This document shows, piece by piece, positions 6,041 through 32,000 of a stretch of DNA of 32,000 bases; within the stretch, counting starts at the first letter, position 1, and each line of letters opens with the position of its first letter. Made by a program: the position numbers and the translations under genes. The stretch is from Paramicrosporidium saccamoebae KSL3. Taxonomy: Eukaryota > Fungi > Cryptomycota. The notes under the pieces were generated by a model. The model was given only the letters and a program-made list of their open reading frames with translations, made no database searches and was not told the DNA's origin. The stretch covers positions 1 to 32,000 of the forward strand of contig MTSL01000035.1 of the NCBI GenBank assembly GCA_002794465.1, read 5' to 3'.

Positions 6041-6217
6041 AGACTTTATGTATTAGAGTGCGAGGTTTACGGTCCCATAGTAAGGAAATTACCATGGATT
6101 CTTCCCCCATCACGCCACATGATCACTTTACTACTTTACACACTGCGCGCCTTGTCTATTCCTCACGTCCCTCCAGTCTTACCCCCCTTCCCGTAATCTC
6201 GAAATCTTACATTTATC

Positions 6218-7090: not shown

Positions 7091-7177
7091 CAACTTTGTA
7101 TGTACGATATTTCCACCGCCTCCCCGTTCTCATCATAATGGGATAGCATATACGAAAGTGAATATTCGTATCTTTTC

Positions 7178-8532: not shown

Positions 8533-8600
8533 ACTATAAATGATCAAAAAATATCAATCAATCACATATGTGTCGTGTGGTGAAAAGAGACAAAGTGAGG

Positions 8601-8686
8601 CGAAAAGAGGTAAAAAGTGGCAAAAAGTGGTAAAAAGCGGCAAAAAGTGGCAAAAAGTGGCAAAAAGTGGTAAAAAGTGGCAAAAG
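8601..8686. repeat. Tandem 10-bp repeat (C/T)AAAAAG(T/C)GG, ~8.5 copies
   Basis: Directly visible units at 8601, 8611, 8621 ... 8681, lying between two convergent genes. Confidence 0.95.
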
Positions 8687-8738
8687 AAGTCGTGTTCATT
8701 GTTAATCGACCGACATAATTCGAGCGAGACGAAAACTT

Positions 8739-8773
8739 GCTAACTGTTAACTGCTAACTGCTAACTGCTCACT
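8739..8773. repeat. Tandem 7-bp repeat GCTAACT, 5 degenerate copies
   Basis: gctaact gttaact gctaact gctaact gctcact. Confidence 0.9.
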
Positions 8774-8856
8774 GTTCTCGGATACCCAACTAACCAATCC
8801 TCTATATCACAAACAGGAATCAAATTAATGGAATTACTTTCGTTATTTAACAAAAG

Positions 8857-10173
8857 CTAATCTCTATTATCGTCCCAGTTGACGAATACTAGCAAAACCA
8901 CTGCAAAGAGCAGCACAATCCCAGCAAAGGCAAAGTAATGGAATGGCGAGGGGATAAAGACGAGTGACAGGAACACTGTTGTTGCCGTCAGCACCAGCAT
9001 GGTAAGCCAAAAGCCCATTGGTGAGAGGTATCCAAGTCGTAAGCCACAGATCATACTCCGATGTTCACTGTCATCGAGGAGGCCCCAGGCATTTCGCATT
9101 TCGAATCGTTGTCGTTGGGCCGTCTGCTGAGTGCCTCGGGCCAGCGGTCGTCCATCAGGGCCCAGCACTGTCAGATCATATGGCAAGTCTGATCTCCGAT
9201 GAAGCTGAAATAGCTGATAGTCGTCCGGATTCACAGAGTTGACCTTGAAAAAGTCTCTTATATCTGCCCTCATTAAAAAATCATCGTCGGTTCCGAAAAA
9301 CGATGCCTCGTAAATGACCGGTACTGGACTCGTGTCGTCGTCCAACTGACTTAGATCTAGTACCGTGGGTCCCGTCTGCGTCACTTCGGGCAGACTTGAT
9401 GTGCTCTGATTGCCCAGTTGCATCGATTCAGACATACTTCTCCTGTGACTAAAGCTGGAGCATCGCGCTACCGTGTCCAACTCGGAATGTCCCACCGAGC
9501 TCCTCAGCACATCCTGCTGCTCTCTCCTCATCTGCCTCTCGGCCCAAGCGCGGTCAAACTCTTCCACCGTCACTGCAAAGTAGTGCACATCGCCAACAAT
9601 GAGCATGTTATTTAGGGGATTCCGGCTCTTCATCCGGTGCAAAAGTCCTTCTTCTGGCTGTGTCCTGAATATTACTCTGTTGATGTGGTGTGCCGCATAG
9701 TACGAAAAGTAGAGTTTTGTTAGGTTATTGGGATCGACCGTGGTCACTCTTGCCAGCAAAAAACTCTTCCCCGACACTCTTGCCACCCTAATTAGTGACT
9801 CGAACGTCTCTAAGGTAAACGTTTCCTCATTAGCAGCGTCGAGGTACTCTGCATCTGAATCGTGATTGGTCTGCGAACTGTCAACTTGGTCCATGGATTT
9901 CATAGTGTCTTCATGGGCATCCTCTTCCAGCGCAATCTTTTTGGCCTCGGCCAGATCTATGATGGGGGCGCCGAGCAGTCGGATCAGTCCAGTATTCTTC
10001 TTCTGCGACGGGTTATTTTCAGTCTTGTTAGTCTCAGGGCCGGTCTCAGGATTTGCCTCTGCAACACTGCTGCGGATCGAGTTGGGCTCTGCCGCGTTGG
10101 CGACATCGGGAGGAGTGGTATTTAGTAATGGTTTACGTGGCGACTCGCAAGGGCTATTCACCTGGGGTATCAT
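8857..10173 (-). CDS. DUF5092-like protein with two C-terminal TM helices; 5' end uncertain
   Basis: 450-codon ORF. FTLETF...LARVTT...SYYAAHHIN...NPLNN...VHYF resembles my recollection of the DUF5092 consensus. C-terminal hydrophobic pair. First ATG is 10173; two possible small upstream exons extend to ~10335. Confidence 0.7.
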   Translation of the reverse strand: MIPQVNSPCESPRKPLLNTTPPDVANAAEPNSIRSSVAEANPETGPETNKTENNPSQKKNTGLIRLLGAPIIDLAEAKKIALEEDAHEDTMKSMDQVDSSQTNHDSDAEYLDAANEETFTLETFESLIRVARVSGKSFLLARVTTVDPNNLTKLYFSYYAAHHINRVIFRTQPEEGLLHRMKSRNPLNNMLIVGDVHYFAVTVEEFDRAWAERQMRREQQDVLRSSVGHSELDTVARCSSFSHRRSMSESMQLGNQSTSSLPEVTQTGPTVLDLSQLDDDTSPVPVIYEASFFGTDDDFLMRADIRDFFKVNSVNPDDYQLFQLHRRSDLPYDLTVLGPDGRPLARGTQQTAQRQRFEMRNAWGLLDDSEHRSMICGLRLGYLSPMGFWLTMLVLTATTVFLSLVFIPSPFHYFAFAGIVLLFAVVLLVFVNWDDNRD

Positions 10174-10386
10174 GCTGAATGCATATGTCAGAGATTTTCT
10201 CCTTAGCACTATAACTACTACTGGGGAAAACGGAGACTTCTATTCTTGGAATATGCTGCCCAATGGCAATTGCTCGGAATATTACCCCTTACTCCTGATT
10301 GGTAAACAAATCTCCTGACCAGCCAATGGAGCCATAATGATTTATTGGTTACTAAAAAGAGAGACTCTAGGGTACAATCGGGAATT

Positions 10387-12353
<1,967 letters not shown>

Positions 12354-12444
12354 CGAATTAACAAGGTTTATTGTTTGCAGCTCATCCTGACTCTGCAGTT
12401 TATCTTTTGACTTTTGCTCGCCGAAAACACATCTCTCTTACAAT

Positions 12445-12929
12445 TCACTCTGAATCTTCCGTCCGTTTCTTAGTCTTTGCCCTCCAGAGACGTGCCATCC
12501 CCTCACAAATCCCGACATCTTTTGTGTTGTATTGGTAGAGTCCGTACATGGTTCCCAACGTTCCAGCATAAAGCAATGCCATGGCCAGTGGGTATATCAT
12601 TGGGAATTTGCGTTTCGGTAGGTAATCTATGATGATGGAGGAGAAGCCCAGGTGGCAGTGGAGGGGAAAGACCACTCCGATGGCAAAGTCTACAAGGTGG
12701 CTTGGAAAGCTTACGGCCGCGCCGATTAAACCGAGACTGGCCACAGACAAAGCCCGCTCGTATATCCAATGGTAGCTCCCATGCCAAGGGTCAATCTTTT
12801 CGCCAGCTAGAGAGTTATTTCTTCCAACCACTAGGTACCAAGGGTCGTATTAACGGATGGTTCCGGCCCTGCCGTGTAGCGTCGAAGATTAGTAACATGA
12901 AAAGTCCGACTTGTAAGCCGCCGAAGCAT
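12445..12929 (-). CDS. SDH4: Succinate dehydrogenase cytochrome b small subunit (CybS); intron 12838-12807; 150 aa
   Basis: HGSYHWIYERALS and PLHCHLGFSSIIIDYLP motifs. Exon 1 encodes the Arg-rich mitochondrial-type presequence MLRRLTSRTFHVTNLRRY. Confidence 0.9.
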
Positions 12930-12979
12930 TGAAAATCCCACCGAAATTACAATTAAATCAATTCTCGTAAACCGGTTGG

Positions 12980-13261
12980 ATGATATATCGGCCTGCTCCG
13001 GTCACAGAGGTAAAGGCTGCCATCATAGATGAACAGCTGCGCAGTATAATACTGGCAGACCGTGCGAATAATGTACCAAGTCATGCAAATTCTGACGATC
13101 CCGGGTTTGTGCCCGCCGAAGGGCGCCTTACTGCAATCAAAAGGAGAGTCGCTGTTCTGCAAGCACAAAGAGCACGACTTTTACAACAAGTCCCAACGCG
13201 CGCAAACACCACAGCAACGGCTGAGAATTTTGAACAAGACGTCATTGACGCAGAATCCTGA
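12980..13261 (+). CDS. Hypothetical small coiled-coil protein (93 aa); weak resemblance to Snapin/BLOC-1-type subunits
   Basis: ATG ORF divergent from SDH4, followed by AATAAA (~13272). The RLTAIKRRVAVLQ heptad segment is only weakly suggestive. Confidence 0.45.
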   Translation: MIYRPAPVTEVKAAIIDEQLRSIILADRANNVPSHANSDDPGFVPAEGRLTAIKRRVAVLQAQRARLLQQVPTRANTTATAENFEQDVIDAES

Positions 13262-13501
13262 CACTGTAAATAATAAAAGTTAGACATGGTAAACAGAAGA
13301 ATATTGCGTAGGTAGATTGGAAAGGGGTAAGGAGAGAAATGTGAAAATCCGTTCATTATTATTAGTCCAACAGTCTCTACAAGCTATAGAAACATTGCGA
13401 GAAACACCATACCACCACCCTATGTAGGACACAGTACTCTAAACACAGATTAGACGGATCTTTCAGCTCCTAGAGGTTACAAATTTATTGTCTTGCAGCT
13501 C

Positions 13502-13881
13502 TTAAGCCTTGGTAGCTACTGGCTCCTCAGCAACCGCCGTCGCGCGGGTGTAAATGTTCAGCGATGCCGACGAGTGCACACGCTTGATCAAGCCCTTTCC
13601 CTCCAACTCGGCGAGAACCTTGCGAGCAGCGCTGCCGTTAATCTTCATACGGTCCATCAGCACACTGCAGGTAATCAGCTTGTAAGTGGGCACATCCTTG
13701 TAGAGCTTGTCCATGGTGGCCTTGTCAATGACGACGGCATTGTTGGACTTTTCCTTGACCTTTCCCTTGGACCACTTCTTCTTCTTGGCCTTACCACCGC
13801 TCGATGGCTTTCCTGCTTCAGCCTTGGTCTAAATAAGAGTTAGTAACGGATGAACAAGACCCGGGAGGGTTCACGTACCAT
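13502..13881 (-). CDS. RPS25: 40S ribosomal protein eS25; exon 1 is the ATG alone; intron 13878-13829; 109 aa
   Basis: [15 protein letters not shown]...YKLIT...[10 protein letters not shown]...IYTRA. The 50-nt intron has a GTACGT donor and a TACTAAC branch point. Confidence 0.97.
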
Positions 13882-14044
13882 TTTGAACGAGGGAGCAGAC
13901 CGGGGTATTGGGATGTGATGTAGGGGATTGATTGTCTTAATATTTGTGTGATAGACTAGCTCTATTGGATGGATATTTGAGGATCAACCGTGAACAACGG
14001 TGAATAAATTCTCTTTCCGTTTGACTTGGTTCGTAGCAATTACT

Positions 14045-14170
14045 CCACCACGCAACAACCATCCCACCACACAACAACCATCCCACCACGCAACAACCAT
14101 CCCACCACGCAACAATCACCCCACCACACAACAACCGCTCCACCATACAACAGTCACCTTCCCACGCAAC
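14045..14170. repeat. Tandem 19-bp C/A-rich repeat CCACCAC(G/A)CAACAACCATC, ~6.5 copies degrading rightwards
   Basis: Units at 14045, 14064, 14083, 14102 and 14121, followed by degenerate copies. Confidence 0.92.
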
Positions 14171-14178
14171 AGTAGTAT

Positions 14179-15312
14179 TTATTGAATGTGACGGGTCGCC
14201 GAAGCGGCTTTGGATAATCTATTCATGATGGCAAGGCCTTCATCATTCTCCTCTATTGATTGCGCAACAATTAGCGTCGGGTTCACAGAATCAGCCGCCC
14301 TCAGCGCCGAGAACAAATTTCTGGCAATCTCCTCCCGATCCCCCGTGGTGGAAAGTGGAAATTCGAAATAACAATCGTCTGTGATGGCGCTCTGAGATCT
14401 TATCGTCAGTCGAGCGATACGGTGATCAGAGTTGAGCTCTTGTTTAATAAACTTGGAGATGGCCTCGTCCAGCTTGGCTTCGTCAGTGCCATGAAATAGT
14501 AGCAACGGACTTGTGGGAGAGTAGTGGCGATACTTCATACCAGGAGTTGCTGGTCGATCCTCCATCTGCTTAGTCTCCTCAGCGGTCAAGTTGTCCGAGT
14601 TCTTATTGAACACGCGCACATCTGGGAGCAGCTCGTGCAACATCCGTGCAGTTATGGATCCAGGCCGCAAGATTATTGGCGGGTGGCGGGTTGCATCCAA
14701 AACAGTCGATTCTAGGCCAAATCCAGAAGATCCACCGTCAACAATATAATTTATCCGTCCTTCCAGGTCCTCCAAAACATGAGCTGCCGTTGTCGGACTG
14801 GGTCGACCAGAAAGATTTGCAGACGGCGCCGCCAAGGGGAATCCACACAATTCAATGATTTTTCGGGCAATCGGGTGGGAGGGAAAACGTACAGCGACAG
14901 TGTCCAAACCGGCAGTGACCACATCAGGCACACCTTCCTTTTTAGGAAGGAGCACAGTAAGGGGTCCTGGCCAGAATTTACACAGTACAGGCTTCAGTTT
15001 TTGGGGTATACAAAGTGCATCAAGAACATTGGCATTGGGCTGTGCGTCGTCTTTTGGCCGAACAAGCATGCGCAGCATCTCCAATGAAGAGATGTGCGCA
15101 ATAAGAGGATTATCTGACGGCCGCTTCTTAACGCTGTATATTCGCTGGCAAGCGTCAAAGTCTAGAGCGTTGGCAGCGAGACCGTAAACCGTTTCGGTGG
15201 GTATCGCAACCGGGCGGGACTCTTTCAAGTCGACAATAGCTGGCGCAAGTGCATGTTCTAATTCATCAGCCGTGGTGCACTCTGCAGCTTGTAATATGAC
15301 AGTCTTGTGCAT
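14179..15312 (-). CDS. SUA5: Threonylcarbamoyl-AMP synthase (YrdC plus SUA5 domains), 377 aa
   Basis: PTETVYGL, KKRPSDNPLI, PGPLT, APSANLSGRPSPT and PGMKYRHYSP motifs. Confidence 0.97.
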   Translation of the reverse strand: MHKTVILQAAECTTADELEHALAPAIVDLKESRPVAIPTETVYGLAANALDFDACQRIYSVKKRPSDNPLIAHISSLEMLRMLVRPKDDAQPNANVLDALCIPQKLKPVLCKFWPGPLTVLLPKKEGVPDVVTAGLDTVAVRFPSHPIARKIIELCGFPLAAPSANLSGRPSPTTAAHVLEDLEGRINYIVDGGSSGFGLESTVLDATRHPPIILRPGSITARMLHELLPDVRVFNKNSDNLTAEETKQMEDRPATPGMKYRHYSPTSPLLLFHGTDEAKLDEAISKFIKQELNSDHRIARLTIRSQSAITDDCYFEFPLSTTGDREEIARNLFSALRAADSVNPTLIVAQSIEENDEGLAIMNRLSKAASATRHIQ

Positions 15313-16331: not shown

Positions 16332-16844
16332 ATGAGCTCTGTCCATTCCAGGGCAGCCGGCTATTGCTGGATCATCCTCGGGTAGAAACATTTGCAAATC
16401 AACAATCTGATTGGATGGCTTGTCAAAAGTCTTTATGCGCAGATTGGGAGCAGCTGTTGTGCACAGAGCAGCGCGAGTTTATCAATTTCAGATTTAAGAG
16501 AGTGTACAGACTACAGGGATTCTAACGGCCATAGCTACGAGTCCGTGCTAATACCCACCAAGCTGGATTTTGAGGAGCTATACTCCTCCGTAACCGAGAG
16601 ACGACGCACTACAGAAGCTCCGGCTACGGAAGCCAAGCACAAAGTGCAAATATTACCTAACGCAACTACGTCCGTAACCCGACGCAAAGACTACAACGAA
16701 GATAAAGAGACAAAAGTGCTAGTCCCGAGGAGGCTTTCAGCCAACCGTTTCAAACTCTACCGGTTACGCATGTCACGCCCCCGATGGCAAGGACTCTTCC
16801 TATACCGCACATTTAAGCGTCTCCGCATACCGACGTGTCAATAA
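16332..16844 (+). CDS. Hypothetical protein, possibly signal-peptide bearing; needs a ~48-nt intron (16382-16429) to skip an in-frame TAG
   Basis: ATG 16332 is in frame with ORF 16392-16844 and divergent from MIS12. The AAG acceptor is atypical. No recognisable motif. Confidence 0.3.
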
Positions 16845-17206
16845 ATCCAACGTTTTATATGTGACAACATGGTGGATTGAAAAATAAACAGTGTCTGATA
16901 GTAACTTTATTCAAATCTCAACAGACCCTTTATGACATGTCATTACATTGCGTAGTGGGGATAACATCATGGATCAGGTCATGTGGGAACCCGTTTGCTG
17001 TTAGTCAAACAGCCTAATGCGGGCGAGGAGGGGACTTGCTCAACTGCTGATCTCAAGATCGTAAGGACATAGATCTCACTGTTCTCAAATGCCCAGCAAA
17101 CGATCCACTCTATCACACAGGTGCACCTTCTTCAAATTAGGGAATTACCTTTAAATATCCAACTAAAAATACCCTATATCACAGATATACCCTCCCTCAC
17201 TTTATT

Positions 17207-18611
17207 TCAATATGTCGCCCAATCAGGCACAGCTAGACAAAAGGATGTCGCACCGGAAATTAGTAGAGTGTCATTTCCTGGAGCCCAGCGGACAAGACGC
17301 GGATCATTAACTGCCGGCTGGGGGATAGAGAGACATCCACTGGGTTGCCAGACAAAGACGTTTGACGCCTCAGTTGCAACGACCAGAACAGGCGACACGT
17401 CATGCCACGAAAAGGATCGCACTGAAGATGCCTGCTGCAGTACGGCCACTACTTCCAGTTCGTTGACATTGATAATCCAGACACAGTTTGGATACTCACT
17501 GGTGACTGCGGCAATGTAGGCAGAATCATTGGAGAATTCAATCTGCAAGTTGGGTGTCCTCTTTGTATCTACCGACCGGCTAGCTTGAAGCTGAAATCCC
17601 GATTCATCTACCAAATAACAGCAGAACGGGCAAGTCTTACATTTTGACCGATCAACTACATTTCCCAGCTGATTCACCTCTTTGACAATCTTTTCCTTAA
17701 AGACTATCTACACATTTAGCCCCAATTTAATGTCTTGCCGTTTCATGAGGCATCAGTGATGACGGGCCAATGTCCAGGATTGCTCCCATTTTCTGTGTGA
17801 TGGAATTCCACAACGAAAATGAGGTTGGATTCCTGACAGCTGCTGCAATCCACCCTGCCTTGCTCCAAACCACCTTTTCATATCCGCTGCCGTATTCGGC
17901 CAGGCCACTAATTACTTTGCACGAGGCGCCATCCGGCGCAAAGATGAAAATCCGATCTGAGAAGGCCGGTGCTTCCCATGCAATGATTGCAGGTCGCAGC
18001 TCCGTCGTCCGCTCAAGAAACGGACAGAATATTAAATCTTCCAGATTGGCCGACTCGGGGGGCCGTACGCTTTGTACTACCCGCCACGCCGAATCATACA
18101 CAATAATTACATCCTCAAATTCTCTGCGGACAAGGACCGCCAGCCACCGATCGTCAGGGCTAAACGCAAAACCTCGATCAGTGAATTTCGGCGAATGAAT
18201 TACCGCCTGGGGAAACTTTTCATCCAACTTCCAAATACGGACGGCTATTCGGTGTTTCAGAACGACCAGAAAATGAAGCGAATCAGGCGCCCACAGAACT
18301 CGTTCCACCCCCAAGCGCACATTTTCTGTCACAGTACAAATGGGTCGATCACTGGTCTCAAAGTCCCAAACAAAAAATCTCGCCAGCGCATAATCTGCCA
18401 ACAGCAGGAACTGATTATTTGGCGCCCAGACAAGCTCCCGCCGACCAGGACCGCTCTCCGGGACAGGAAGAAGATAATGTAGAGCGCCATTAGTAGTAGA
18501 ATGGATTGCGACAAAGAGCTGGACGGCGTCTCGACGATGAAGACCGGCTACGTATCGCCCAGAGGGGGAGAGACGTGCTCCGACCGTCTTGAACCCTTCA
18601 GTAAACTCCAT
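17207..18611 (-). CDS. WRAP73: WD40 protein WRAP73/WDR8; introns 17738-17708 (GC-AG) and 17640-17608; 446 aa
   Basis: MEFTEGFK...SPSGRY, WAPDSLHFLV..HRIAVRIWKL, FSPDDRWLAV and PNCVWI...VLQQASSVRSFSW follow the WRAP73 layout. Splicing restores IVFKE and SKYE, which correspond to conserved segments. Confidence 0.85.
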
Positions 18612-18690
18612 AATATTTATTCTATTGTTTTCTTTCTTTACAACCCGCAGTGTTTCCTGCAACGACATTTCTAAGCACATCTGGGCTCAT

Positions 18691-18942
18691 TTAAACACTT
18701 TCTTGTTCTGCCTCCACAGGCTCGTCTTTCAAAAACATGGCTGTTATGGTCTCGCGAAGACTGGTATCCTTAAGCTGCTGGTTCAGAAACTTTTGGTACT
18801 TTGCGCTTGTTCTCATTTCATGCTGCCTTGGTGTCATACACTGATTATGATCTTCTTGTATCGCAAGGCTATCGGCCATGTCTAGTCCAAGGCTGCTGGC
18901 CATGTTCAGTCCAAGAATTACCAGAAACAGTCCACGTCGCAT
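18691..18942 (-). CDS. Small hypothetical secreted protein (83 aa)
   Basis: MRRGLFLVILGLNMASSLG has an n/h/c signal-peptide shape. No recognisable domain. Confidence 0.45.
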   Translation of the reverse strand: MRRGLFLVILGLNMASSLGLDMADSLAIQEDHNQCMTPRQHEMRTSAKYQKFLNQQLKDTSLRETITAMFLKDEPVEAEQESV

Positions 18943-19286
18943 CTTAGGCACTACCCTGGTTCAGTACCATGCGTTAAAAAGGTTTACCATGAACGCCCAG
19001 TTGGTGGCTGGTTGTCTTGTTACCTGCGGCATTATTTAACACTGATTCGTCAATTGGGCATACCTTAATAAACTTGATTCTTAGATGAAAGGGCTGTAAT
19101 TTCAAATGAAAACTGCGTCCAGGGAAAATTTGTAATTTTCTGGGGCACTCTGTCTAAAGTATGCTTTATTCTTAAGGTAGATCAAGCAAAAAGCCTATCA
19201 CCATAACTCTTGTTTAGATACGTGTTACAACCACGATTACAGCCATGTTTTCAACCCTGTGCTAGCTTTGATTGTTCGTCATTGGC

Positions 19287-19667
19287 TTAGAAGGACAAAC
19301 GACGATTAACGGGTCTCCCGCATAGACCGGGTTTATCGGTCTTGGGGGATGCGGAGCCGATAATCGGTCTGCGAGGAGCCTTAGCACGGCGCGTCAACGG
19401 GGGCGGGGTGTGAGAGCTAGGAGCTGGGGATGGAGAGGGAGCCCGAGGAGAAGAGGCACGAGAAGGCGTGGTGCGAGGAGATGGAACCTGAGGAGAAGAA
19501 GCACGAGAGGGCGTGGTGCGAGGAGATGAGGAAGACTGGTCGAAATTCACCATATCGAGGGTCTCATTAGATGATCCTATTTCAGAGACGCTTTCAGATG
19601 AGCCAATGGCTGCCACATAGGACGAAAGGAGCAAAAAGGATAAGAGACTCAGTGACAGAACTCGCAT
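19287..19667 (-). CDS. Small secreted Ser/Pro/Arg-rich protein (126 aa) with two 15-aa repeats
   Basis: MRVLSLSLLSFLLLSSYVAA signal-peptide-like N-terminus; 45-nt direct repeat at ~19445-19535 encoding SPRTTPSRASSP. Confidence 0.65.
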   Translation of the reverse strand: MRVLSLSLLSFLLLSSYVAAIGSSESVSEIGSSNETLDMVNFDQSSSSPRTTPSRASSPQVPSPRTTPSRASSPRAPSPSPAPSSHTPPPLTRRAKAPRRPIIGSASPKTDKPGLCGRPVNRRLSF

Positions 19668-20055
19668 TTTTCAAGCACCCCGGCTACCCCAACAGGCCAG
19701 TACCCCACAATATAACTACGATGACTAAAAGTCCAAAGCGTGATAGTGGCAACTCTGTTTCATGTCTATTCTGAACAAGTTGAAGATTCATCTTTAAGAG
19801 TGATGAGTATCTGTAAACAGCACCATTCCGAACACCGACGAGCCTGGTTTGTCAACAACCTTTGACGTTCCAGACGATAGAATAGACTTTAATGCCTAAC
19901 AGTATCCATAAAGCAGTGGAAATTTGATAGTAAACCCCACGATTGCGGCATGAGAGGGAAATTGCCTAATCTCATTCGTTGGAATGCAAGGTTAATTTAG
20001 ACTTTTCGATTCTTATATAAACAGCGATTCGGCCCAGGGCTCAGCATCCGAAGTA

Positions 20056-21221
20056 ATGGAAGATGCCTAGCTAGTCATTGGAATTGTTGCGGCAGCAGCC
20101 GGCGGTCTTAGTGCCTGCCTCCTGAAAGCAAGCCCACCCCTGGATGGTCCTCGCAGACACTATAGGGTCTGCCGCGGCAATGTTCTGCAGTACAGTGGCA
20201 GCGGCCGAGGCTAATCTGTGGTCGTATGGCGTAGGAGGTGAGCTAGTAGCCCTTCTCCTTTCGTTGCTACCGTGCCGCCGTGCATGGGACCGCCGCCAAC
20301 AAAAGAAGCGGGCCCGAGCCCTTGGGATGTGGTTACCCGAGGACACCATATAGGATGCCTCCTTCTCCATTACCCTCTCAGTATATCAAGGTGAATCGGT
20401 TGTCTCTAATTCTATAGTTCGCTCTCCACCGCTATGGAGTCGATGCGTCCTGTATCCCACACCTACCAATTCCATCCCTGCAGAGGGCATTCGCAACGCA
20501 TTCCATCGAGCGCCAGGGACCGAGTCTGGCGGAGTTCAAGACAGAGTGCCTTGGTACAGTCACCTGTCTGGACGTAGGCGGCTTTCAAAGCTTTCAAATA
20601 ATGGCAGGCCTGCTGTTGTTCGTGGAGCCAACCGAAGCTGCAAAATGTCGAGGATGGTACGTGGCACGCAGCATGTGCTATTGTCTTGGAGCTTTTCATC
20701 AAGTCAAAGACCGATAAACTCGTGACTGTAATGCGTCTCATCTGAAAGTCACGCGTGCTCTGCCAGACGTCGGAACATGAATTTACAAGTAATGTGCTTT
20801 GTCGTCTGGCAGAGCACGCGTGACTTCCAGATGAGACGCTCCAAAGACGTCCGAGTCAAGATCCATTTGACCACACTCCCGGGTGACCGTTTTGAGCGTA
20901 GAAACAAATTGAACTTGAAGCGCTGATACTCGATGGGAATCTCTAAGAGTACCGGTTTTATGGACTTGACTGGTGTTTTTGGAGGTAATCTTCAAGGGAC
21001 CGGGATATTTGATTCACTACACTCATTGTTGTGAGACGTGTGAGCATCGTACCGTGGGACGCAGGTCATACAAGCATTCTGCTTTCGAGAAGCCATGGGA
21101 TTGGTGGGCATTTAAGACTATGTTGACAAGGTACATGGTAATGCTTCCACTACGCAGCGGACTGATGGTTATGTATAAACGTGGCATTTCAGACCCGGAA
21201 GAACTTGGCTTTTTGACATAG
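20056..21221 (+). pseudogene. Pseudogene of the 3-TM/zinc-ribbon family (copy 2)
   Basis: Aligns with copies 1 and 3 from promoter to CETC...EKPWDWW. Stops at 20068 (codon 5) and 20351, further TGG->TGA changes, a 7-nt frameshift insertion near 20668 and a local inversion. Confidence 0.9.
20733..20839. repeat. 37-bp inverted repeat (1 mismatch) with a 33-nt loop
   Basis: Left arm 20733-20769 gcgtctcatctgaaagtcacgcgtgctctgccagacg; right arm 20803-20839 cgtctggcagagcacgcgtgacttccagatgagacgc. Confidence 0.95.
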
Positions 21222-21398: not shown

Positions 21399-22558
21399 AT
21401 GGAGAGTCCGCAGCTAGTCACAGGGATCGTTGCTGCCGCTGCTGGAAGTCTCAGCGCCTGTCTTATGGTCTGGTTTCGATGGGATCATGCCCATCCTTGG
21501 AGCACCCTCGTCGGGTTGTTCCTATCATCTGTGGTAGCGTTTTGCGGTACAGTGGCAGCGGCCAAGGCTAGTCTGTGGTCGTATGGCGTAGGAGGTGCGC
21601 TGGTAGCCCTTCTACTTTCATTGCTACCGTGCCGCTGGGCATGGGACCGCCACCAACAAAAGAAGCGGGCCCGAGCCCGAGGGCTGTGGCTGTCCGAAGG
21701 CACCGTCGAAGGTGAATCCTTTTATGTCACCCTGACAGTATCAATGTGAGTCGATCGTCTTTAATATTGTAGATCGCACTCCGCCGATATGACATTGACG
21801 CGTCATGCATCACAGACTTACCGATTTCAGATATGAAGAGGGCATTTGCGACAAGGCCCATCGCGCGCCAAGGACTTAGTTTGGCGGAGTTTAAAATAGA
21901 GTGCCTTAGTGCAGTCACTTGCCTGGACGTAGGCAGCTTTCGACAAATGGCCGGAATGCTGCTGCTTGCGAAGCAAGCTGAAATCGAAACGTGCAGAAGA
22001 TGGTATGTCAAGTGCGCAATTGTCTTGGATCTCTTCGTAAAGTCGAAAGATGAGGAGCTCGTTAATGTGGTGCGCTTGATGTGGAAGACCCACCTGTTCT
22101 GCCGGGCATTGAGGTGTGAATTGACACGCAATGCTATTTATCGTCTGAAGACCGAAATGGCCAAATTTCTTATACATTTTTTGATCCAGGAGCACCCCAA
22201 GGACGATTGGGTCAAGGCCTATTTGACAGAATCCGGAAACGCACAGACCCCTCCAAGTGGTAGTTTCACGCGCATAGAAGACTTGTCAATAGAATGCTGG
22301 TACGCCGCGGGGGATCTTGAAGAATGCCGTTTATGTAGGTACAGGCCTTGGAAGAGACCGGCAGTTTTGGAAGTACCTTATAGGGGGTTAAGATACATAT
22401 TTCGCTTTACCCGCCGTTGCAAAACTTGCGGGTGCCGTACTTTGAGGCGTGGGTTATGCAGGCGTCCCGATCCTAAGACGCCATGGGACTGGCGGTCATG
22501 GGACAGTGTTTCAGTAACAGGCAGCGAGGACATTGGACTTGGAAGGATATTTGACTAA
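21399..22558 (+). CDS. 3-TM/zinc-ribbon family copy 3; exons 21399-21737 and 21773-22558; 374 aa
   Basis: Same exon sizes and the same 35-nt GTATCA...TAG intron as copy 1; CRLC-x27-CKTC and PWDW motifs conserved. Confidence 0.75.
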
Positions 22559-22861: not shown

Positions 22862-23713
22862 CTAACACGATACATTGCGCTCGCACCGATCAGGCCAACG
22901 AAACCGGTAATAGCCCAGTCTAACCGGATCCATCATTGAAAGACAACCCGGGCACACCATTGTAGCCGAATTGAACCATTTGCGTTTTTCAGAGTGACTA
23001 AACAGCGCCACTTCTGATACTGTCAAAACCAGCTCACTGTCTGATCCCTCCAAAATGCAAGTCATCAGGCCGATATATTTTTTAGGATAAATCTTTCCCT
23101 CGAAGAATATTTCGTCATCCCATGGATCTACGTCGAGCGGAAAACGGAGAGAATTGATCACACACATTGCCAAAATGACTCCCATTAGATAAAATATGAG
23201 GGTGCCGATGCCATAAAAATAGCCAGCACTGATCACTACTGCTAGCAATATGAACGGAATGGTGTCGGTGATCAGGACAATGGGCCAGCCTAGCCACTTG
23301 TAAATATCTATTTCATAGCCAAGACGAACAGTTCTCCCCTTTCGACAGAGAAACTTGTCGTTTTTGTGGTAATACCCAAGTGTCAAGCCACCAGGGTGAT
23401 GCCAAACAGAAAAGAGAAATCCGAGATACTTCAGTCGCCCACTAGCTGTGCAATTTACATCATTATAACGATATTCGGCTGTCATGAAAGAGCGAAGGCT
23501 GATATGCATGATGAGATAGTAGAGAGGAATGAACGTGAAGAAGCCAAGCCAAGTTGAAAGATAGATCGGCCAGCCCCAGAAGGGATAGCACATGTTGACA
23601 ATTGTCCATGCTGCCAGCAATACAAAGCATGCATCAGCGATAATACTGAGACATTTTACCAGCTTTGGAACAATCACACTTCCTTCTGCAGGTCTGAATG
23701 AGAGATACAACAT
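22862..23713 (-). CDS. Hypothetical ~4-TM membrane protein (~283 aa from ATG 23713; ORF extends to 23809)
   Basis: 315-codon ORF with two hydrophobic hairpins. A TATAAATA and CCAAT inside or just upstream of the longer ORF's 5' end favour the MLYLSF start. Confidence 0.65.
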   Translation of the reverse strand: MLYLSFRPAEGSVIVPKLVKCLSIIADACFVLLAAWTIVNMCYPFWGWPIYLSTWLGFFTFIPLYYLIMHISLRSFMTAEYRYNDVNCTASGRLKYLGFLFSVWHHPGGLTLGYYHKNDKFLCRKGRTVRLGYEIDIYKWLGWPIVLITDTIPFILLAVVISAGYFYGIGTLIFYLMGVILAMCVINSLRFPLDVDPWDDEIFFEGKIYPKKYIGLMTCILEGSDSELVLTVSEVALFSHSEKRKWFNSATMVCPGCLSMMDPVRLGYYRFRWPDRCERNVSC

Positions 23714-24149
23714 CGGGTGGGGAATTCGGAGTAGCTCCACATATACTATTGTCCAATAGGAGCGACCCCTTGAAGAATATGTTGGATGGTTATTTATAGA
23801 ACAGTGCATTCATTGGCCGATAAAATTTACTGCACTAAACGACAATGTGATGCATTGTTTATTGGTCGCTGACACTTCTTACGTACCTGTTGTAGGTACT
23901 GCCCAGTCATCGGGGAACAGATCCTTCTGTTAGGTCCTGCATTTTGGAAACGTCAGTTGCTCACAATGGGCCAATGATAGATCGACTATTGGGGAAATAT
24001 GAGTGGATGCAGTGCCCGTGCCACGTAGTGGGAAAAATGTCATGGACAAAGTCGGGAAGAACGAGAACTAGTTTAGTATTAATGCAACAGTCTTTGCTAC
24101 TCGGCTTCAACTAACTTGAAATAGTAAAATTCATTTTAGTTTCAGAAGC

Positions 24150-24155: not shown

Positions 24156-24156
24156 G

Positions 24157-24230
24157 TGACCTACGCAGGGGTCGAACCTGCAATCTCCAGATTCGTAGTC
24201 TGGCGCCTTGTCCAATTTGGCCAGTAGGCC
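24157..24230 (-). tRNA. tRNA-Arg(ACG), intronless
   Basis: GGCCTAC/GTAGGTC acceptor stem, TGGCCAAATTGG A-box, CCAGA-CT-ACG-AA-TCTGG anticodon arm, GCAGG-TTCGACC-CCTGC T arm. Confidence 0.95.
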
Positions 24231-24478: not shown

Positions 24479-27400
24479 CTACCATAGACCACGGACATAA
24501 ACATGATAATTCTTGACCTTGTGCCACCTCCTTGAAAAATGGTCATTTCCCCTGACCTCTTTAGGATTCTTCCCGAGTGCTGCATAGATTCTATATCGAC
24601 CGGGCAATGTTGGGCGGTAGACGACCTCGTACAGAGACTGTTCCGGACGGGGGATGACCTTGCACTGGAGCGGACGATCGTCGGGATGTGCGACAAGCGA
24701 GTCGCTGGATTGGGACGTTGTAGGGGGCGCAGACTGCACCCGATGCAGTCGAATAGCCAGATCAACGGGTGAGAGAGGCAGGACCTTTCCACAGGAATCG
24801 TGGAGCTGGAGGAGGAAGGTACCCCGCTGATGAGGCTGGATAGAATAGAGTCCGGTGAAGAAGATGCGCGTCTGGGGGAGGTTGGGCAGTGGTGAGAGGA
24901 AGGAGAGGTCCTCGATGGCTGGGATGGCATAGTGGGCCGTAGCAATCGAATATCCAATCAACATTTTGCTCGTGTTCCCGAGAATCTGTCGCACATCCAC
25001 TGGGAACTTGGCCACGTATTTGATGTCGGGCGCAGCCTCAGATGCCATGGTTGTGATGAGAATCTTTTCGTCTGGACGGTATTGAATCTGCGCAAAGTTC
25101 CAACCTGTCATCATGTCGGGCGGAAAGGCGGCAGCGTTTTGTAACATGAGCGGATGGGACTCTCCATTTTTGTAAATGGCCAAAGTGTTCTTGATTGGGT
25201 CGCAAACAATCCCAACGCTGTGATCAAGCCCCACATAGCCATAATCCGTGTGTTTTGAAAATCTCAATGGTCTGCCGCGTCGCAAGATGATAGCCCAGCC
25301 GGGCTTTTCAGGTCCATATCTTCGGGTAGAGGCAAACTTTCCAAGATGTGTAAACCTGAAGCGGAACGAAATGATCAGATTTTGACTCGAATGGAACATC
25401 TTGGTGCTCCAATACCGCTCGGTGAGATTTTCGTGTGACCCGCCACGTCTTGCCAAGTTTTGTTTGGTGAGACCTCTGAATAGGTCCGTGCTGGGCTTGG
25501 GGATGCAGCTGATGGATTGATGACAGGGATCGGAAAAGGGAGTACTGGGCATGGGCAAATCGGCAATTTCAATCTGTAAATCCATGTAAAAGGGCGTATC
25601 CTTCTTGCCAGGCACAGACAGTCCGACTGTGACAACACTTGGTCGAACAGCAACACAGAGTCCATCTCTAAATACGCCTTGGTCAACCAGCTGAGGGATC
25701 GCTTGGTAATTGGGGACTGTAATGGAAGCCTTTACCGCTTCACCAGAGGTCATTGAGGTATTTGGTGGCAGCTTGACTACAGGTCGGGTCTTATGTCGGT
25801 ATATACATTTCAAATATTGAGTAGGTGACAAGGTGGGTTCCTGGCATTCCTCTGCGGCAAGCCTAATTACACCAAATGCATCTCCGCGCAGCTCCCCAAG
25901 GACATCCTGCAGTCTGCTAGCGGCAGAACTGTAAAGTACGCCCGTCATGTCTTTAAACTCGATATTCAGGAACATGCCCAAAATGTTGAAATCAAAAGTA
26001 AAGTCGTTCCTAAAGGCCATGTGGTAGAAACCCTTTTCTATATTTTCCATCAGTTTGGCATAGCGTTGGTAGCCTTGTTTCTTTAAATCTTCCCACATGC
26101 CAGTCCAGCCGCCGTCATCACTGTCGCGGCTGTCATCAGAAGAGGAAGAATATTCTCTCTTGAACAGTTTCTTGCCCTGCTTGGCGCGTTTGTTGTAGTG
26201 TCGATCGATCCGCTCACTATGCTTCCGCAACACTTTAATTTCGCCATTATCCCACAATCTGTCAAATTCACTGGACGAGGATGGGACGGATTCCGTGCTG
26301 CCACTACTTTTCTTGCTCTCCCTTCTACGTACTCGAGCTTGCTTCTTCCGTGACTTTCCGGCCCTCTGGATCCGATTCTTCCACACACCTGGAACTTTGA
26401 CATGTTTGTTGGGTGCTTCGGGGTCAACTGACGGCGATCGCTCGCGATGATAATTACGGGACCTCTGTAGACGTCTCCTTTCGCTCGTACTTCCAGTATC
26501 CAACACCAGACTCTTTACCAGCTGATCCTTTGTCATTAATCTTGCTCCTTTGATCGGATTATTAGTCTGCACTGTTGTTAATGCCTCGCTGAGAGAGTCA
26601 CTTGAAGAGCGTCTTGAGCGACCGCGTCTGGGCGGAGGATCGTTCCACGATGGGGATGATCGAGATCTGCGCGTAAACTTTGTGGAGGACTTTTGTGAAC
26701 CCGACCGGGACACCGACTCTTGCGAACCCGATCGAGATACTGATTCTTGTGAACCCGACCGAGATACTGGTTCTTGTGAACCCGACCAGGATACTGATTT
26801 TTGTGAACCCGACCAGGATACTGATTCTTGCGATGACCCGATGTTGGTGGGCCTGGAACGAATGGGGCTGAAACGAGTAGATCTGGTATGGGTAGAGCTA
26901 GAACGAACTGGCCTGGTATGGGTGGGGCTGGAACGAGTTGAACTACTGCGGGCTGAATTGCTGTGGGAAAAGCCTGAATTCTGCGCTGAGCTAATGTGAA
27001 CAGGACTCGAGTTTTGTGGCGGTGTAGTAGGGGCTGAGCCTGAATCCCCAGACAATACTGATTGTGGCAAAGAATCATCGGCAGATTTTGGCTTTTTAAC
27101 TTCATCCGTCACAGTACTTTGATCTTGGACTGAATTAGTACCATTTGCATTCCTTTCTTTTTCGGCATCTTGACGATCCACCTGCGGTTTAACCGTTTCT
27201 TTTGATGATCTTGAGCGCGTACTGGCACGAACAGAACGGCGATTATTCCGTTCTGAGTCGGACGACCACGAATCATCTCTTAAGCTACGGTTTCTCCGAT
27301 TAGCCACTCGTGTTTGACTGTGAGACTGTGATTGAGGGCGCGATTTTGTTTGATTACGAGACCTTGTTCGACTATGAGGTCGTGTTTGATTACGAGACCA

Positions 27401-30400
27401 TCTTTGGCTTTGAGGTTGAGTTTGATTACGAGATCTTCTTTGACTTTGAGGCCGTGTTTGATTACGAGACCATCTTTGACTTTGAGATCCTCCTTGATTA
27501 CGAGACCATCTTTGACTTTGAGATCCTCCTTGACTACGAGACTTTCTTTGATTTTGAGACCTTTCTTGACTCTGAGACCTTTCTTGACTATGTGACCTTT
27601 TTTGACGGTGAGGTTGTGGCTCATTATGGGATAGGGAATTTTTTTCATGGTGACGTGAATTTTCCCGGCTACTGCGCAGCCTGTCGCGGTTACTATATGG
27701 TTTGTCATCACGATATTGTGTCTCGCGTCTTCTTCTATACGCACCACGTTTCTTGTCATTCTTGTTTGCGTCACCGTCTCCCCAAACTGCATTATATGCT
27801 GAATTCAATAGGGAACTACAAGTATTCCAAAATGATGTGCCCATATTGGACTCGGACTTTTGCGGTCTTTGCGGTCTAGGACTACGGTCGCTTCGTCCCC
27901 AACCAGTATCGCTTCTGCTAGGGAACAAGTCTTCATTCCAGGATCTCTTGTAATGTTGTTTACTGGGGACCAAGTCTTCATTTAAGGAACTCGCATCATG
28001 TGGTTTACTGGGGACCAAGTCTTTGCTCAAGGATCTCTTGTAATGTCGTTTGGTCTCGGGTGTACCCCAAATTCGATTTTTTGCCCATGTAGCCCATCCC
28101 TTTGTCCAATCCCAAGCATTCCACAGATCATTTTTGGCCCGAGTTGCCACATTCTTTGCCACACTCCAAGCGGCTGCTGGTGCAGAAGAGGCAACTTTCA
28201 TCAAATCATGCACCTCACGCCAATCGACATGGGAGGCAGTGTCGTCAAAGAGCCCAAGAGGCGCATCACGTCGTCCAAATGACATGTCCAAACGGAGACG
28301 GAAATGTTTGGAAAGGTCCACTAGTGCAGACACCTTGACGGGCATCCCAAGAGAGAGACCCGTGAGGAAATCGCTAAACTCGGGAACAAATGTGCCGCTT
28401 GGTTTGATCTTTCCAAATGCCGTGCGACTGACAGTCACATGGACTAGCAGCGGATTAGATCCCGGCAGCAAGGTGAGCTTTCCAATCTTGACCCGTACAA
28501 ACTCATAGCCTTTGTGTATGTATCGATAGGAAATGTCCTCATCCATGACAATGGTTGTACAGGGAATCGGGTTATTTATCCAAATGCCACCAATGGTCAA
28601 TTCCATCTGTTCTCGTCCCGACTTGAGAAGCTTCATCGGCACATCACCCGGTAGCAGATATGAGAAGATGGGCGCCACATTTGTCTCGGGGAACATCATA
28701 CTCACCAGACTGCTAAGGAGGGTGGATCGATGCAGCCGCTCATTGGAAAAGGAAATGTTCAGCGGAGAAAAGTGCACAGGCACACGATGCCCATGACGTT
28801 TGTAGACGGGAACTGGATCAAAAGTAAGAATAAACGAGGGATCAATTTGCCAGGGAGCCAGCAACTCGCCCAGCATTCCAATTCTTTTTGCCAACTTTAA
28901 ACGTACCATCACCGTCTCAACGTCGTCTTTGTGTTTCTTTCGGGGTTTCCTATGTCGCGGATAGGGAAGACGGGCGACACGTTTGATGGTGAGAGGATCC
29001 ACTCGCAGTTCAATGGCATCCATATCATTGATTGCAATGGCAAAATCCAATCGAGAGACTCTCACCCCCACTGCCAAGAACTTTGGATGTCTTCGAAAGT
29101 TCAACTTGTCCAACAGTCGGGCAAGCAGATACGCCACTCCGTCAACTGCCGGTTGGATGGCATTGAATAGGGTAATGTCAGCATCCATAAAGGGACCCGA
29201 TGGTGCTGATGCTCTTCGATCCTTGGGATCGCACATGCTGGGAATAATACACGGAATACGGTACTCTCGTACCCCATGGGCGCCTTTTGGACGGACTACG
29301 AGCGCGTAATTAGACTCGGCAGCAGCACGGCCCTTTTGAACTCGTCGCCAAGCCCGCGTCCAAAATTCAACAATCATATGGATTGGCAGAGAGCTCTTGA
29401 ATCCATGATGCTTTTCCTGGCGAGAGTTTTGTAGTCTGCGTCTTTCCAGTCTGATGCGTCGAATCCATTTCTTACGGGTTTCATTCTTTCTTCGTCGCGC
29501 AGTGCGGAATGCTCGAATCCGACCTTGCACAGTTTCGGGAAGGAAGGGAGACGAGCGCACCTCGAGTTGAAGATGTTTTTTTGGCAATCTGCGCATCACC
29601 CGTTTGCTCGTCTTGTCGTCGGCCCTTTTCCTTACAAAGTTGTGCAGATGCGCCAAGATCCGTCTCATGGTGGCGGAGGAAAAGTCGTTGGGATGGACTC
29701 GAATGGCAAACTCAATTACCAGACGATTCGTAGTAGGAACCCCATGGTTAATCAAGACGCGGTTTTCATCGAGTCGAAAAGTCAACTGTCCCTGGGAGAT
29801 GCGCGTCTTTAGCCAGGACTGCTCGTATCGGGTAGTGAGAAGGGTGCGTCCCCATTGGACTGACATGAGAAACGCTAATGAATTCCCGGATCCCCTCCTC
29901 GGTCGCTGTTTCAAATTATAGACACACGCAGGGGGAACTCTGATCAAGATTCTCCCCTTCATCATTGTGCGTGATACAGAATCTACATCGACTTGAATGG
30001 AGAGTGGACGTTCTCGATAAAAATTCTTTACCGGAGGACGATTTGGACGCTTCTTCCTGCTGTGTAACGGCAGACTGAGGGGGAATACTTGTCCCACGCC
30101 GTTGATAAGTCGATCGAGAAGCGAAATGTCCTGAGACATGAGCTGTCGACGATCGCTAAAGCCGACGGACGTCTTTACCTTGCGCAGATGGCGTCCAGCG
30201 AGATGATCCGCAGCCTCCAATGCGCCCCTCAGATTAGTAATGGAGGCGCTTAGTGGCAAAAAATTAATCAGTGCTTCATCTTCATTGGCCATCAAGATTT
30301 CCCGCTCCGTCAAATTTGGCTTAGACAGAGCTCGACGGCGTTTCTTCCGATTGTTTGCGATAGTCTCTCGTCGGGTGTGCTTGCTTGGGGCAAGACGGGT

Positions 30401-32000
30401 TGTAATGTCGCAAAACTCGCCATCAATGACGGCCACATTTAGTAAGATGGGGTGCAGGCCGACCTTGGCAACGCAACTGATTGCCTTCTCTACACATTAG
30501 CAAGCTCTTCAAACACATACTTTTGTGACGACGTGTGGGATACAAGCAGCCGTTGGCATGGATTGCAGGGAGCGTAACTGACACATCCAGAAAAGTGGCA
30601 AAGACATTTTTCCTTTGTGTTCGACAAGTGCCCAGTTTGGGCAGCTCCAATAAAACTTGAATGGTCGCCTCGTAAAATCCCGCAATTTTGACCCGTGTCT
30701 TGATGACATCTGCCACCCAGCGAGGCCAATCGGTGCGGTCGCTGACAAGGGCCGAACGGGGAGGAAGACACGTTTCAAAGTCCAACTTTCGGGTGCCAAT
30801 TCGACCGACAACCTGAATCGGCGGGAAGATGGGACTGGTGTACAACTGCACCATATGTCGCCACGCCGCAATCAGAGCGGGTTCCCCACGGATCACCGTG
30901 TCAGTGTGGCGAATGGAAAAGACATAATTAAACGATCCATTGTGGAGAAGCTGCAAGGGCGACAAGCCAGCAATCAGCATTCTTCCATGGCCCTTTTGCA
31001 CGCTCAAATTAGCCAGTTCAATGTGATCAAGTTCCTTGGAACGCACCGGGTAAAAGGAAATGTCCAACGCCTCCCAATACACATACACAAACGGAGAGGA
31101 CAATGCAGGCTTCTTTGCAAAATTCACGTTCCCAGTGGCCTTGACAGACTCTCCATCAGTCGTAACGTCTAGTTTGACATTATGTTTCACCGGTTCAGCA
31201 CGGAGCTCCTCAGCCGTAGTCTCCTTTGTGGGAAATTCCAATGCCCGTTTTGTGCCATGTCGGAATGCCATCTCCCCGCCATGATTTAGTGACCATTGGA
31301 GCTCAAATACGCGCAGGATGGCTGGCAGAATTCCACGACCAGGTGCGCGAAGCACAATCGCTCGATATTCGCCAAGTTCTTTGACAATGTTCTCGGAATG
31401 ATGCACGCGGCCCATTTTATGTCCCGCCTTTACAACAGTGCTCACATCGGCGAGTGTGATGTGGAAGAAAATGTCCGTTCTGGTCTCCTGCGCCTCCTTA
31501 TGCAGGACATCTACTGTGAACACTTTGGTCAGGCCTTCAGTCAAGTCTCCCCGATCCACCATGGCTTGCAAAGTAATCTTTGGCAAATGTCCCCGGAGCA
31601 ATTTTGTATCGAATCCGCCCAGCATTCCTTGCACATATTCGTGTCCCAGAGAGACCTTGACGACAAACTTTGGGGTGGGACCGCTATCGTCAATTTCAAC
31701 CAAGCCGACATCAATGGCTGCAGCCGAAGACTCGGTAAACTCTCTCTTCACAAGTCGATCTGAGGGCAAGCTTAGCAAAGAACGCAATTCTCCAAAGCTG
31801 GCTTCATAGGATATGGTAGATAGCCATTTTTGGAGATGGCTACCTTTTGGGGCCGAGCCAACCGAAATTGACCAATCGTCCTCGCCATCACGAACCTTTT
31901 CCAGCAACTTGACAAGTGCCTTTTTGTGACCCACCGTAGTTGATATCTGCACAATCAATTTCCCCCCATCAGGGCCATTAGTGTCACGTCTTAGCACATG
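24479..32000 (-). CDS. Giant multidomain protein (>=2,496 aa, 5' end outside window); intron 30520-30490
   Basis: The 524-aa and 1985-aa ORFs join in frame through a 31-nt GTATGT...GCTAAT...TAG intron, and the frame is open to position 32000. C-terminal L-type lectin-like (~25385-24905) and filamin-like (~24890-24520) segments. Confidence 0.8.
26691..26835 (-). repeat. Coding 27-bp tandem repeat (SGSQESVSR-type), ~5.3 copies
   Basis: Units at 26691, 26718, 26745, 26772 and 26799. Confidence 0.9.
27310..27610 (-). repeat. Coding 18/36-bp repeat array encoding RSQ/RSRNQ-rich low-complexity sequence
   Basis: QERSQSQERSQNQRKSRSQGGSQSQRWSRNQ...; periodic gattacgagacc/tttgactttgag units. Confidence 0.9.
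27921..28052 (-). repeat. Coding ~45-bp repeat (x3) encoding KDLVPSK/NEDLVPSK/NEDLFPSR
   Basis: ggggaccaagtct and ggatctcttgtaatgt segments recur. Confidence 0.75.

Follow-up and report, generated by a model that had tools for sequence, protein, structure and literature searches.

LEA-2 proteins consist of a cytosolic tail, one helix and a beta-rich module, and have long multi-module relatives in fungi (Levine, bioRxiv 10.1101/2021.03.12.435176); Tag1, Vac7, TMEM106B and the long fungal DUF3712 proteins are LEA-2 proteins of type II topology. The bridge-like lipid-transfer proteins Csf1/BLTP1 and Hob/Fmp27/BLTP2 join an N-terminal helix to a long beta-rich region and measure 2,000–3,000 amino acids (aa). 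Two smaller modules are relevant here as well, namely the seven-strand immunoglobulin (Ig) repeat of filamin/ABP280 proteins (filamin-C, gelation factor, LIN-41/TRIM) and the L-type lectin domain of about 230 aa, known from legume lectins and as the carbohydrate-recognition domain of ERGIC-53/VIP36. With these systems in mind, we analyzed a giant gene at the end of a 32,000-nucleotide (nt) stretch of Paramicrosporidium saccamoebae KSL3 (positions 1 to 32,000 of the 34,038-base-pair contig MTSL01000035.1, assembly GCA_002794465.1; hereafter the window). The visible part of its product comprises a conserved body, a low-complexity spacer, a domain that we call C1, a lectin-like domain and a filamin-type repeat, in this order, and relatives preserve the same layout behind an N-terminal membrane helix. 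The protein represents a previously undescribed eukaryotic family of uncharacterized, probably lineage-restricted, modular membrane proteins. GenBank already lists it as a ‘hypothetical protein’; the new contribution is that the family is defined, its conserved layout described and its domains assigned.

The gene is encoded by the minus strand, for which the listing of open reading frames (ORFs) contains two frames, 24479-30436 (1,985 aa) and 30423-31997, the latter extending to the window edge. Bases 30520..30490 read directly as GTATGTGTTTGAAGAGCTTGCTAATGTGTAG, a spliceosomal intron of 31 nt (30490..30520; GTATGT..CTAAT..TAG) that is bounded by GT..AG and includes CTAAT as a branch-like box. 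Its excision connects an upstream exon (30521..32000; residues 1-493 of the visible part), which is open without a stop up to the window edge, to the last exon (24479..30489; residues 494-2496 and the stop codon at 24479-24481). The result is a single giant frame of 2,496 codons plus stop that is still open at base 32000, whereas without splicing the upstream frame reaches a stop 32 codons past the donor. Throughout, residue numbers refer to the 2,496 residues in the window, L numbers to contigs carrying relatives and P numbers to relative proteins.

In a tblastn comparison, the frame of L004 (65-69% identity) switches identically at the matching protein position, across a GT..AG intron of 37 nt, and L005/L006 (44-48% identity) switch there as well, across an intron of ~84 nt (GTAAG..CTAAT..TAG). 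L002, L003 and P0004 lack an intron at this site, and their frame continues uninterrupted as ..ANGCLYPKVKGREQISCVASVGLHP.., the counterpart in L002/L003 of ..ANGCLYPTRRHKKKAISCVAKVGLHP.. across the spliced junction. The fixed intron site, the variable intron length and the intron-less relatives together make the gene model well evidenced. Furthermore, the upstream exon aligns to P0004-P0007 with 37-66% identity, and the GenBank record likewise places a single gene here, whose product measures 2,792 aa and is linked to no Pfam family; compared with the 2,496 residues in the window, this length places ~296 residues upstream of it. The C-terminus ..VYVRGLW is kept in orthologues, and the GenBank gene range, which extends to 23879, would take in a 3' untranslated stretch. 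An earlier interpretation made from the letters of this DNA (hereafter the sequence-only reading) had proposed that a 31-nt intron fuses two ORFs into at least 2,496 aa, and both the intron and the length hold exactly. The motifs it quoted are also present, HIELANLSVQKG at 30990-31025, KIGKLTLLPGSNPL at 28448-28489 and the lectin- and filamin-like strings at 24587-25378. A tRNA-Arg gene (anticodon ACG; 24156-24230, minus strand) lies ~250 base pairs (bp) downstream of the stop codon, inside the range that GenBank assigns to the giant gene.

An exhaustive search of 1.84 billion representatives with a 1,160-position profile of the body matched 49 proteins at an expect value (E) <=0.001, 37 of them at E<=1e-10, and many of the 49 measure 1,500-2,950 aa. 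Every relative looked up either has no name or is labelled ‘hypothetical’, and all stem from metagenome or read-archive assemblies, except for one NCBI genome (GCA_047514055.1), in which P0012 contains the whole protein as a single ORF of 2,948 aa. Word-indexed protein searches returned orthologous fragments only, and a description of the family was not found in the literature searched. Using HMMER locally across the relatives, we detected the helix and first modules in ~24 members, C1 in ~11 (Psac, P0001-3, P0009, P0011, P0012, P0014, P0019, P0020, P0027), the lectin-like domain in 8 and the terminal filamin-like domain in ~20. Four members (P0012, P0014, P0019 and P0020) unite helix region, C1 and filamin-like domain in a single ORF, and in all of them but P0019 the lectin-like domain is present too. 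Hence, the same layout in independent single ORFs indicates that the architecture is real and conserved and not a chance fusion. Relatives align along the body and the C-terminal region, not along the spacer; identity over 1,300 aa of the body is ~41% with L002/L003. Orthology is supported by the gene ELP6, which is the upstream neighbor of the giant gene in both L004 and L008.

These data also bear on the suspicion that an annotation artefact merged adjoining body and head genes through a low-complexity stretch that happens to be open. Prokaryote-style gene calling indeed puts the body and head of L002/L003 in separate ORFs and different frames, a split for which introns can account. In the window, the frame continues without a stop for 6 kilobases (kb), P0012, P0014, P0019 and P0020 run from helix through filamin domain in single ORFs, and the GenBank record agrees on one product, which makes such an artefact very improbable.

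The organization of some relatives differs in detail. In L002, L003 and L007, tail, helix and first modules (the first ~350 codons) are set apart in an ORF of their own, and a 3' splice-like site (..CTGAT..TAG) immediately precedes the main ORF of L002; these lineages therefore probably have an intron that is missing from L004, the closest relative of the window. The positions noted for this arrangement are L002 3811-3889, L003 9949-10001 and L007 6976-7026. L009, an environmental eukaryotic contig of 187 kb, carries a tandem pair of distant paralogues (2,803 and 2,584 aa; 6001-14412 and 16509-20412) that are ~2 kb apart, whereas a single copy of the giant gene was seen on each other contig examined.

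Recognizable known folds occur in two of the five regions, and the more clearly defined one is the C-terminal filamin/ABP280-type Ig repeat (24482..24892, minus strand; residues 2360-2496), which includes a non-conserved loop and ends in a conserved ..YVRxxW. A 17-sequence family profile compared with PDB sequences retrieved filamin-C (E 4e-8), the LIN-41 filamin domain (E 4e-5, nearly full length) and the gelation factor of Dictyostelium (E 2e-4). Single sequences stay just below the Pfam cut-off for Filamin (PF00630), the window sequence with E 0.0014-0.009 at 17-20 bits against 26.9; of 17 members, nine show this match, always at the corresponding position (best E 4.3e-5). In an AlphaFold model of the C-terminal 544 aa, built from 4 sequences, the mean predicted local distance difference test score (pLDDT) is 44, confidence is confined to the last two domains, and values of 70-80 are reached in the filamin domain, which shows seven strands. 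Foldseek returned filamin repeats as the best PDB matches (1wlh, E 2.8e-6), with target-normalized TM-scores of 0.63-0.64 and a root-mean-square deviation of 3.0 for 4umg and 7o0b. A PDB search with the C-terminal 544 aa found nothing when run as a single sequence, and noise plus a weak filamin-B match when run as a 4-sequence profile; the consensus of the C-terminal profile gave no gain over single sequences against Pfam. Altogether, the sequence match of the family at profile level and a seven-strand Ig fold that superposes on solved repeats establish the filamin-type fold, which the sequence-only reading had recognized from its Ig repeat pattern. The last 137 residues share with filamins this fold and the motif ..Y.V.Y.P..PG.Y.I... 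They differ in occurring as a single copy and not as a rod of repeats, in their long non-conserved loop and in their position at the end of a membrane-anchored protein instead of in an actin cross-linker or TRIM ligase.

The preceding 176 aa (24893..25420, minus strand; residues 2184-2359) probably form a concanavalin-like, L-type-lectin-like beta-sandwich. We scanned this domain alone from eight family members against Pfam, and all matches fell below threshold: Lectin_legB in three of the eight (best E 2.8e-4, in an orthologue; cut-off 26.3 bits), Lectin_L-type_dom in two (E 0.0097) and SPRY in two, the window sequence among them (E 0.0032). All three families are members of the concanavalin-like clan. 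With the eight-member profile, only two of 177,635 PDB sequences scored at E<10, both of them the ERGIC-53 lectin domain (E 0.66-0.77), in an alignment that covers the strand ending ..GISAATG. About ten strands are predicted for the domain at pLDDT 50-75, and the top 50 Foldseek matches of the C-terminal model, a list dominated by the adjoining filamin domain, contain no lectin. The family alignment shows blocks collinear with L-type lectins, ..sFrF.., GWA.., YGY.G..S.gIv.DP, ..v.vqYr..ek.l.v.. and fPvdv..il....iG.s.a.a.

The sequence-only reading had assigned an L-type lectin with altered acidic residues. The collinear blocks, the same-clan matches in several orthologues and ERGIC-53 speak for this assignment; against it, no match exceeds the curated thresholds of PF00139 or PF18483, the domain is shorter than the about 230 aa of L-type lectins, SPRY scores alike for the window sequence, and the acidic/metal positions appear not to be kept. 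As to these residues, the strand reads VGIVCDP, presumably at the place of legume-lectin VAVEFDT; relative to this consensus, the Glu appears lost and the following metal-ligand loop looks shorter, and the Asp is retained in seven of eight members. The closest relatives of the sandwich thus appear to be L-type lectins, and sugar binding is doubtful.

The C1 domain of ~232 aa (25421..26116, minus strand; residues 1952-2183) was delimited from family alignments. It contains an F-x-N-x3-F motif with an invariant Asn and four to five conserved cysteines. Neither a Pfam relative (10 C1 segments) nor, by profile search, a PDB relative was found, and the model of the C-terminal 544 aa is not confident across C1. 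The motif, together with TNPNQW and RNPADF in relatives, made C1 a candidate LEA-2 domain; Pfam, PDB and an hhalign comparison with the body gave this no support.

The conserved body also lacks a known domain. It occupies ~1,300 aa within the window (28064..32000, minus strand, intron excluded; residues 1-1302) and ~1,600 aa when the part known from orthologues is added. It is basic, with isoelectric points (pI) of 9.3 and 11.0 for its two parts, and beta-rich where modelled (residues 1-493). Six cysteines are kept family-wide (C459, C485, C499, C520, C907 and C913), and these, like the four to five of C1, persist between members of ~20% identity. Profile searches found no Pfam or PDB relative of the body, and the window protein, scanned against Pfam in two halves, had no match at E<=0.01. 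Together, the body and C1 (~1,500 residues) match nothing known. Internal repeats of the protein were not detected by blastp and were weak by hhalign self-comparison (P 0.003-0.1). For the N-terminus of orthologue P0005 (842 aa, 5 sequences), AlphaFold yielded a model with a mean pLDDT of 38, in which a helix is followed by strands and occasional helices, and Foldseek matched it to generic Ig-like/macroglobulin arrays (complement, macroglobulin, factor XIII and MHC chains); at this pLDDT, the list says just ‘beta-sandwich-like’.

Between the body and C1 lies a low-complexity spacer of ~650 aa (26117..28063, minus strand; residues 1303-1951), which is rich in Ser, Arg and Gln and has a pI of 11.5. 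Its DNA contains three tandem-repeat arrays, at 26693-26830 (27 nt x 5), 27347-27606 (36 nt x 6-7) and 27921-28051 (45 nt x 3). Its sequence and composition vary among relatives; the L006 spacer is rich in Glu, that of L003 in Lys, Arg, Glu and Ser. In our reading, the spacer is a disordered linker that may be selected for length or flexibility, not for sequence.

The part of the protein beyond the window is known from P0005, P0006, P0012 and the separate upstream ORFs of L002/L003/L007. In these orthologues, a disordered tail leads into one strongly hydrophobic helix, followed by ~250 residues that join residue 1 of the window. The helix (..LCILLVLFLINAAMVSVALW..) has a conserved central Asn within the pattern FLxNAxxVxxAxW; it is the sole strong hydrophobic segment and is kept in ~24 members, and the window part of the protein contains no convincing transmembrane segment. 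The tails are 16-203 aa long, disordered and acidic or proline-rich; PPxPPRR-type motifs occur in the tails of several members, and TAS[IVL]DW in those of the closest clade. The sequence-only reading had pointed to the upstream sequence as the place of a signal or membrane anchor, of which the orthologues provide one transmembrane helix, while a signal peptide is absent from their tails. In the 15 residues flanking the helix, 24 members together have 75 Lys and Arg on the N side versus 49 on the C side. Among them, the N side is higher in 13 and the C side in 2. From these sequence features, and from the cysteines conserved in the body and C1, the N-terminus would lie in the cytosol and the bulk of the protein outside it, in a type II orientation. 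The corresponding order of tail, helix and, straight after it, a beta-rich module is found in orthologues, in a region outside the window.

We thus propose, tentatively and with somewhat less than an even chance of being right, that the protein is a type II membrane tether composed of an anchor, a beta-rich body, a variable spacer and a binding head. The tail of 16-203 aa would stay in the cytosol, and the single transmembrane helix would anchor the protein in the plasma membrane of the parasite or in a secretory or endosomal organelle. The ~1,600-aa beta-rich body and the ~650-aa flexible, disordered spacer could then hold a head of C1, concanavalin-like sandwich and filamin-type Ig repeat tens of nanometres off the membrane, where it may grip a protein or glycan partner. 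The Asn in the middle of the membrane helix may drive self-association. Our data show the gene structure, the order of the domains, the filamin fold and a layout conserved across relatives, from which we infer orientation, location, a role as a tether and the kind of ligand.

Several observations weigh against this proposal. The flank charges are tied in 9 members, which makes the orientation less certain. The window protein has 80 dibasic sites, which a secretory route would expose to Kex2-type proteases, and body and spacer together are strongly basic (pI ~11). Its cysteine content is low (18 of 2,496 residues), and its 15 N-x-S/T sites show no excess, being near our own estimate for chance. 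In the proteins known to contain them, filamin repeats and SPRY domains mostly lie in the cytosol. In addition, both AlphaFold models are of low confidence, and as a consequence the ~1,500 aa of body and C1 have no assigned fold.

Some of these features would fit better with a bridge that faces the cytosol, that is, a protein anchored in an organelle with its bulk in the cytosol, whose body is a divergent lipid conduit like that of Csf1/BLTP1 or Hob/BLTP2 and whose head docks on a partner membrane or the cytoskeleton. Besides the likeness in size and N-terminal helix, the strands predicted directly behind the anchor in the P0005 model are long (12-15 residues) with helices between them, the Ser/Arg-rich disorder is strongly basic with many dibasic sites, filamin- and SPRY-type domains are usually cytosolic, and the tails of some members are very short (16-26 aa). 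Yet bridge-like lipid-transfer Pfam families (Chorein_N, Fmp27, Apt1 or similar) are absent from the window protein and from 8 distant relatives. No bridge-like structure (VPS13, ATG2, Csf1 or Hob) is among the Foldseek matches, which are the generic arrays named above and come from a model too poor to exclude the fold. The flank charges favor the cytosolic N-terminus, the opposite of the orientation that a bridge would need, and translocation of tails of 80-203 aa is unlikely. A large, variable, disordered spacer of 650 aa without conservation would break a conduit, and the lectin-like and filamin head has no equivalent in these proteins. On balance, we consider such a bridge rather unlikely.

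The type II tether that we favor shares its topology with the LEA-2 proteins. The sequence-only reading went further by suggesting putative DUF3712/LEA2 modules like those of Tag1-like proteins in a long membrane-contact, lipid-transfer or adhesion rod with a glycan/protein-binding head, a candidate host-interface machine; the lipid-transfer groove and the role at the host interface are speculative. In the version weighed here, a Tag1-like array of LEA-2/DUF3712 modules is combined with a working, glycan-binding L-type lectin at the host interface. The cytosolic tail, helix and immediate beta-rich module are LEA-2-like, the strings INNPIP..KIGKLTLLPGSNPL and F-x-N-x3-F of C1 have a LEA-2 flavor, L-type lectins appear among the sub-threshold Pfam matches with ERGIC-53 top in the PDB, and P. 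saccamoebae lives as an obligate parasite inside the nucleus (PMC5701793). However, LEA_2 (PF03168) and DUF3712 (PF12505) were matched in none of 35 sequences or segments scanned with Pfam, which comprise 8 distant full-length relatives, 17 first-module segments and 10 C1 segments; the window protein gave no match and orthologues none at E<=5. Four PDB profile searches retrieved no LEA-2 chain, and 3BUT, 1XO8, 1YYC and TMEM106B were found neither by profile nor by Foldseek on the low-confidence P0005 model (mean pLDDT 38). The N-p-N motif is missing from the first module, and the internal repeats are not significant. As regards a working lectin, VGIVCD in place of the VAVEFD-type strand, a metal-ligand loop that looks much shorter and the lack of a lectin in the Foldseek top 50 argue against it. 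The proposed DUF3712/LEA2 modules are hence unsupported, the likeness to LEA-2 proteins in topology is resemblance and not membership, and this combination of LEA-2 array and glycan-binding lectin is unlikely. We regard it as quite improbable that the body and C1 are new folds, or LEA-2-like lipid-binding modules diverged beyond recognition, that together make up a hitherto unseen membrane-to-target tether or lipid-handling machine, specific to Rozellomycota-like parasites and used where they meet the host cell or its nucleus.

P. saccamoebae (MTSL00000000) is an intranuclear parasite of amoebae with 47% guanine plus cytosine and about 3,750 genes (PMC5701793). That a gene of 2,800 aa and its conserved layout are kept among only ~3,750 genes suggests that the product has an important job. 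The host-contact proteins of the parasite are largely unknown, and a protein anchored in a membrane and bearing a lectin-like and Ig head at its far end is, as a hypothesis, a reasonable candidate for attachment or tethering. Paramicrosporidium stands near the root of the microsporidian lineage; the finding is relevant to early-diverging fungi and microsporidia, and the kind of protein is not surprising.

Other features were noted elsewhere in the window. An ATG-started ORF of 315 aa with several hydrophobic segments (22862-23809, minus strand) is uncalled in the record, and an exact look-up of its product returned no match; it may be spurious or encode a membrane protein missed in the annotation. 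A direct repeat of ~400 nt (20182-20586 and 21539-21941; 76-84% identity, copies ~1,356 bp apart) overlaps short minus-strand ORFs and also a portion of the called gene 21399-22558. The small annotated gene at 19287-19667 (minus strand, 126 aa) has an N-terminal signal-like segment and contains the Ser/Pro-rich repeat ..SPRTTPSRASSP.. twice, making its product a candidate secreted or wall protein. Further along, 14179-15312 encodes a Sua5 protein, and an ORF at 8857-10209 (minus strand), with a 438-aa product in the record, matches Pfam DUF5092 with E 1e-35.

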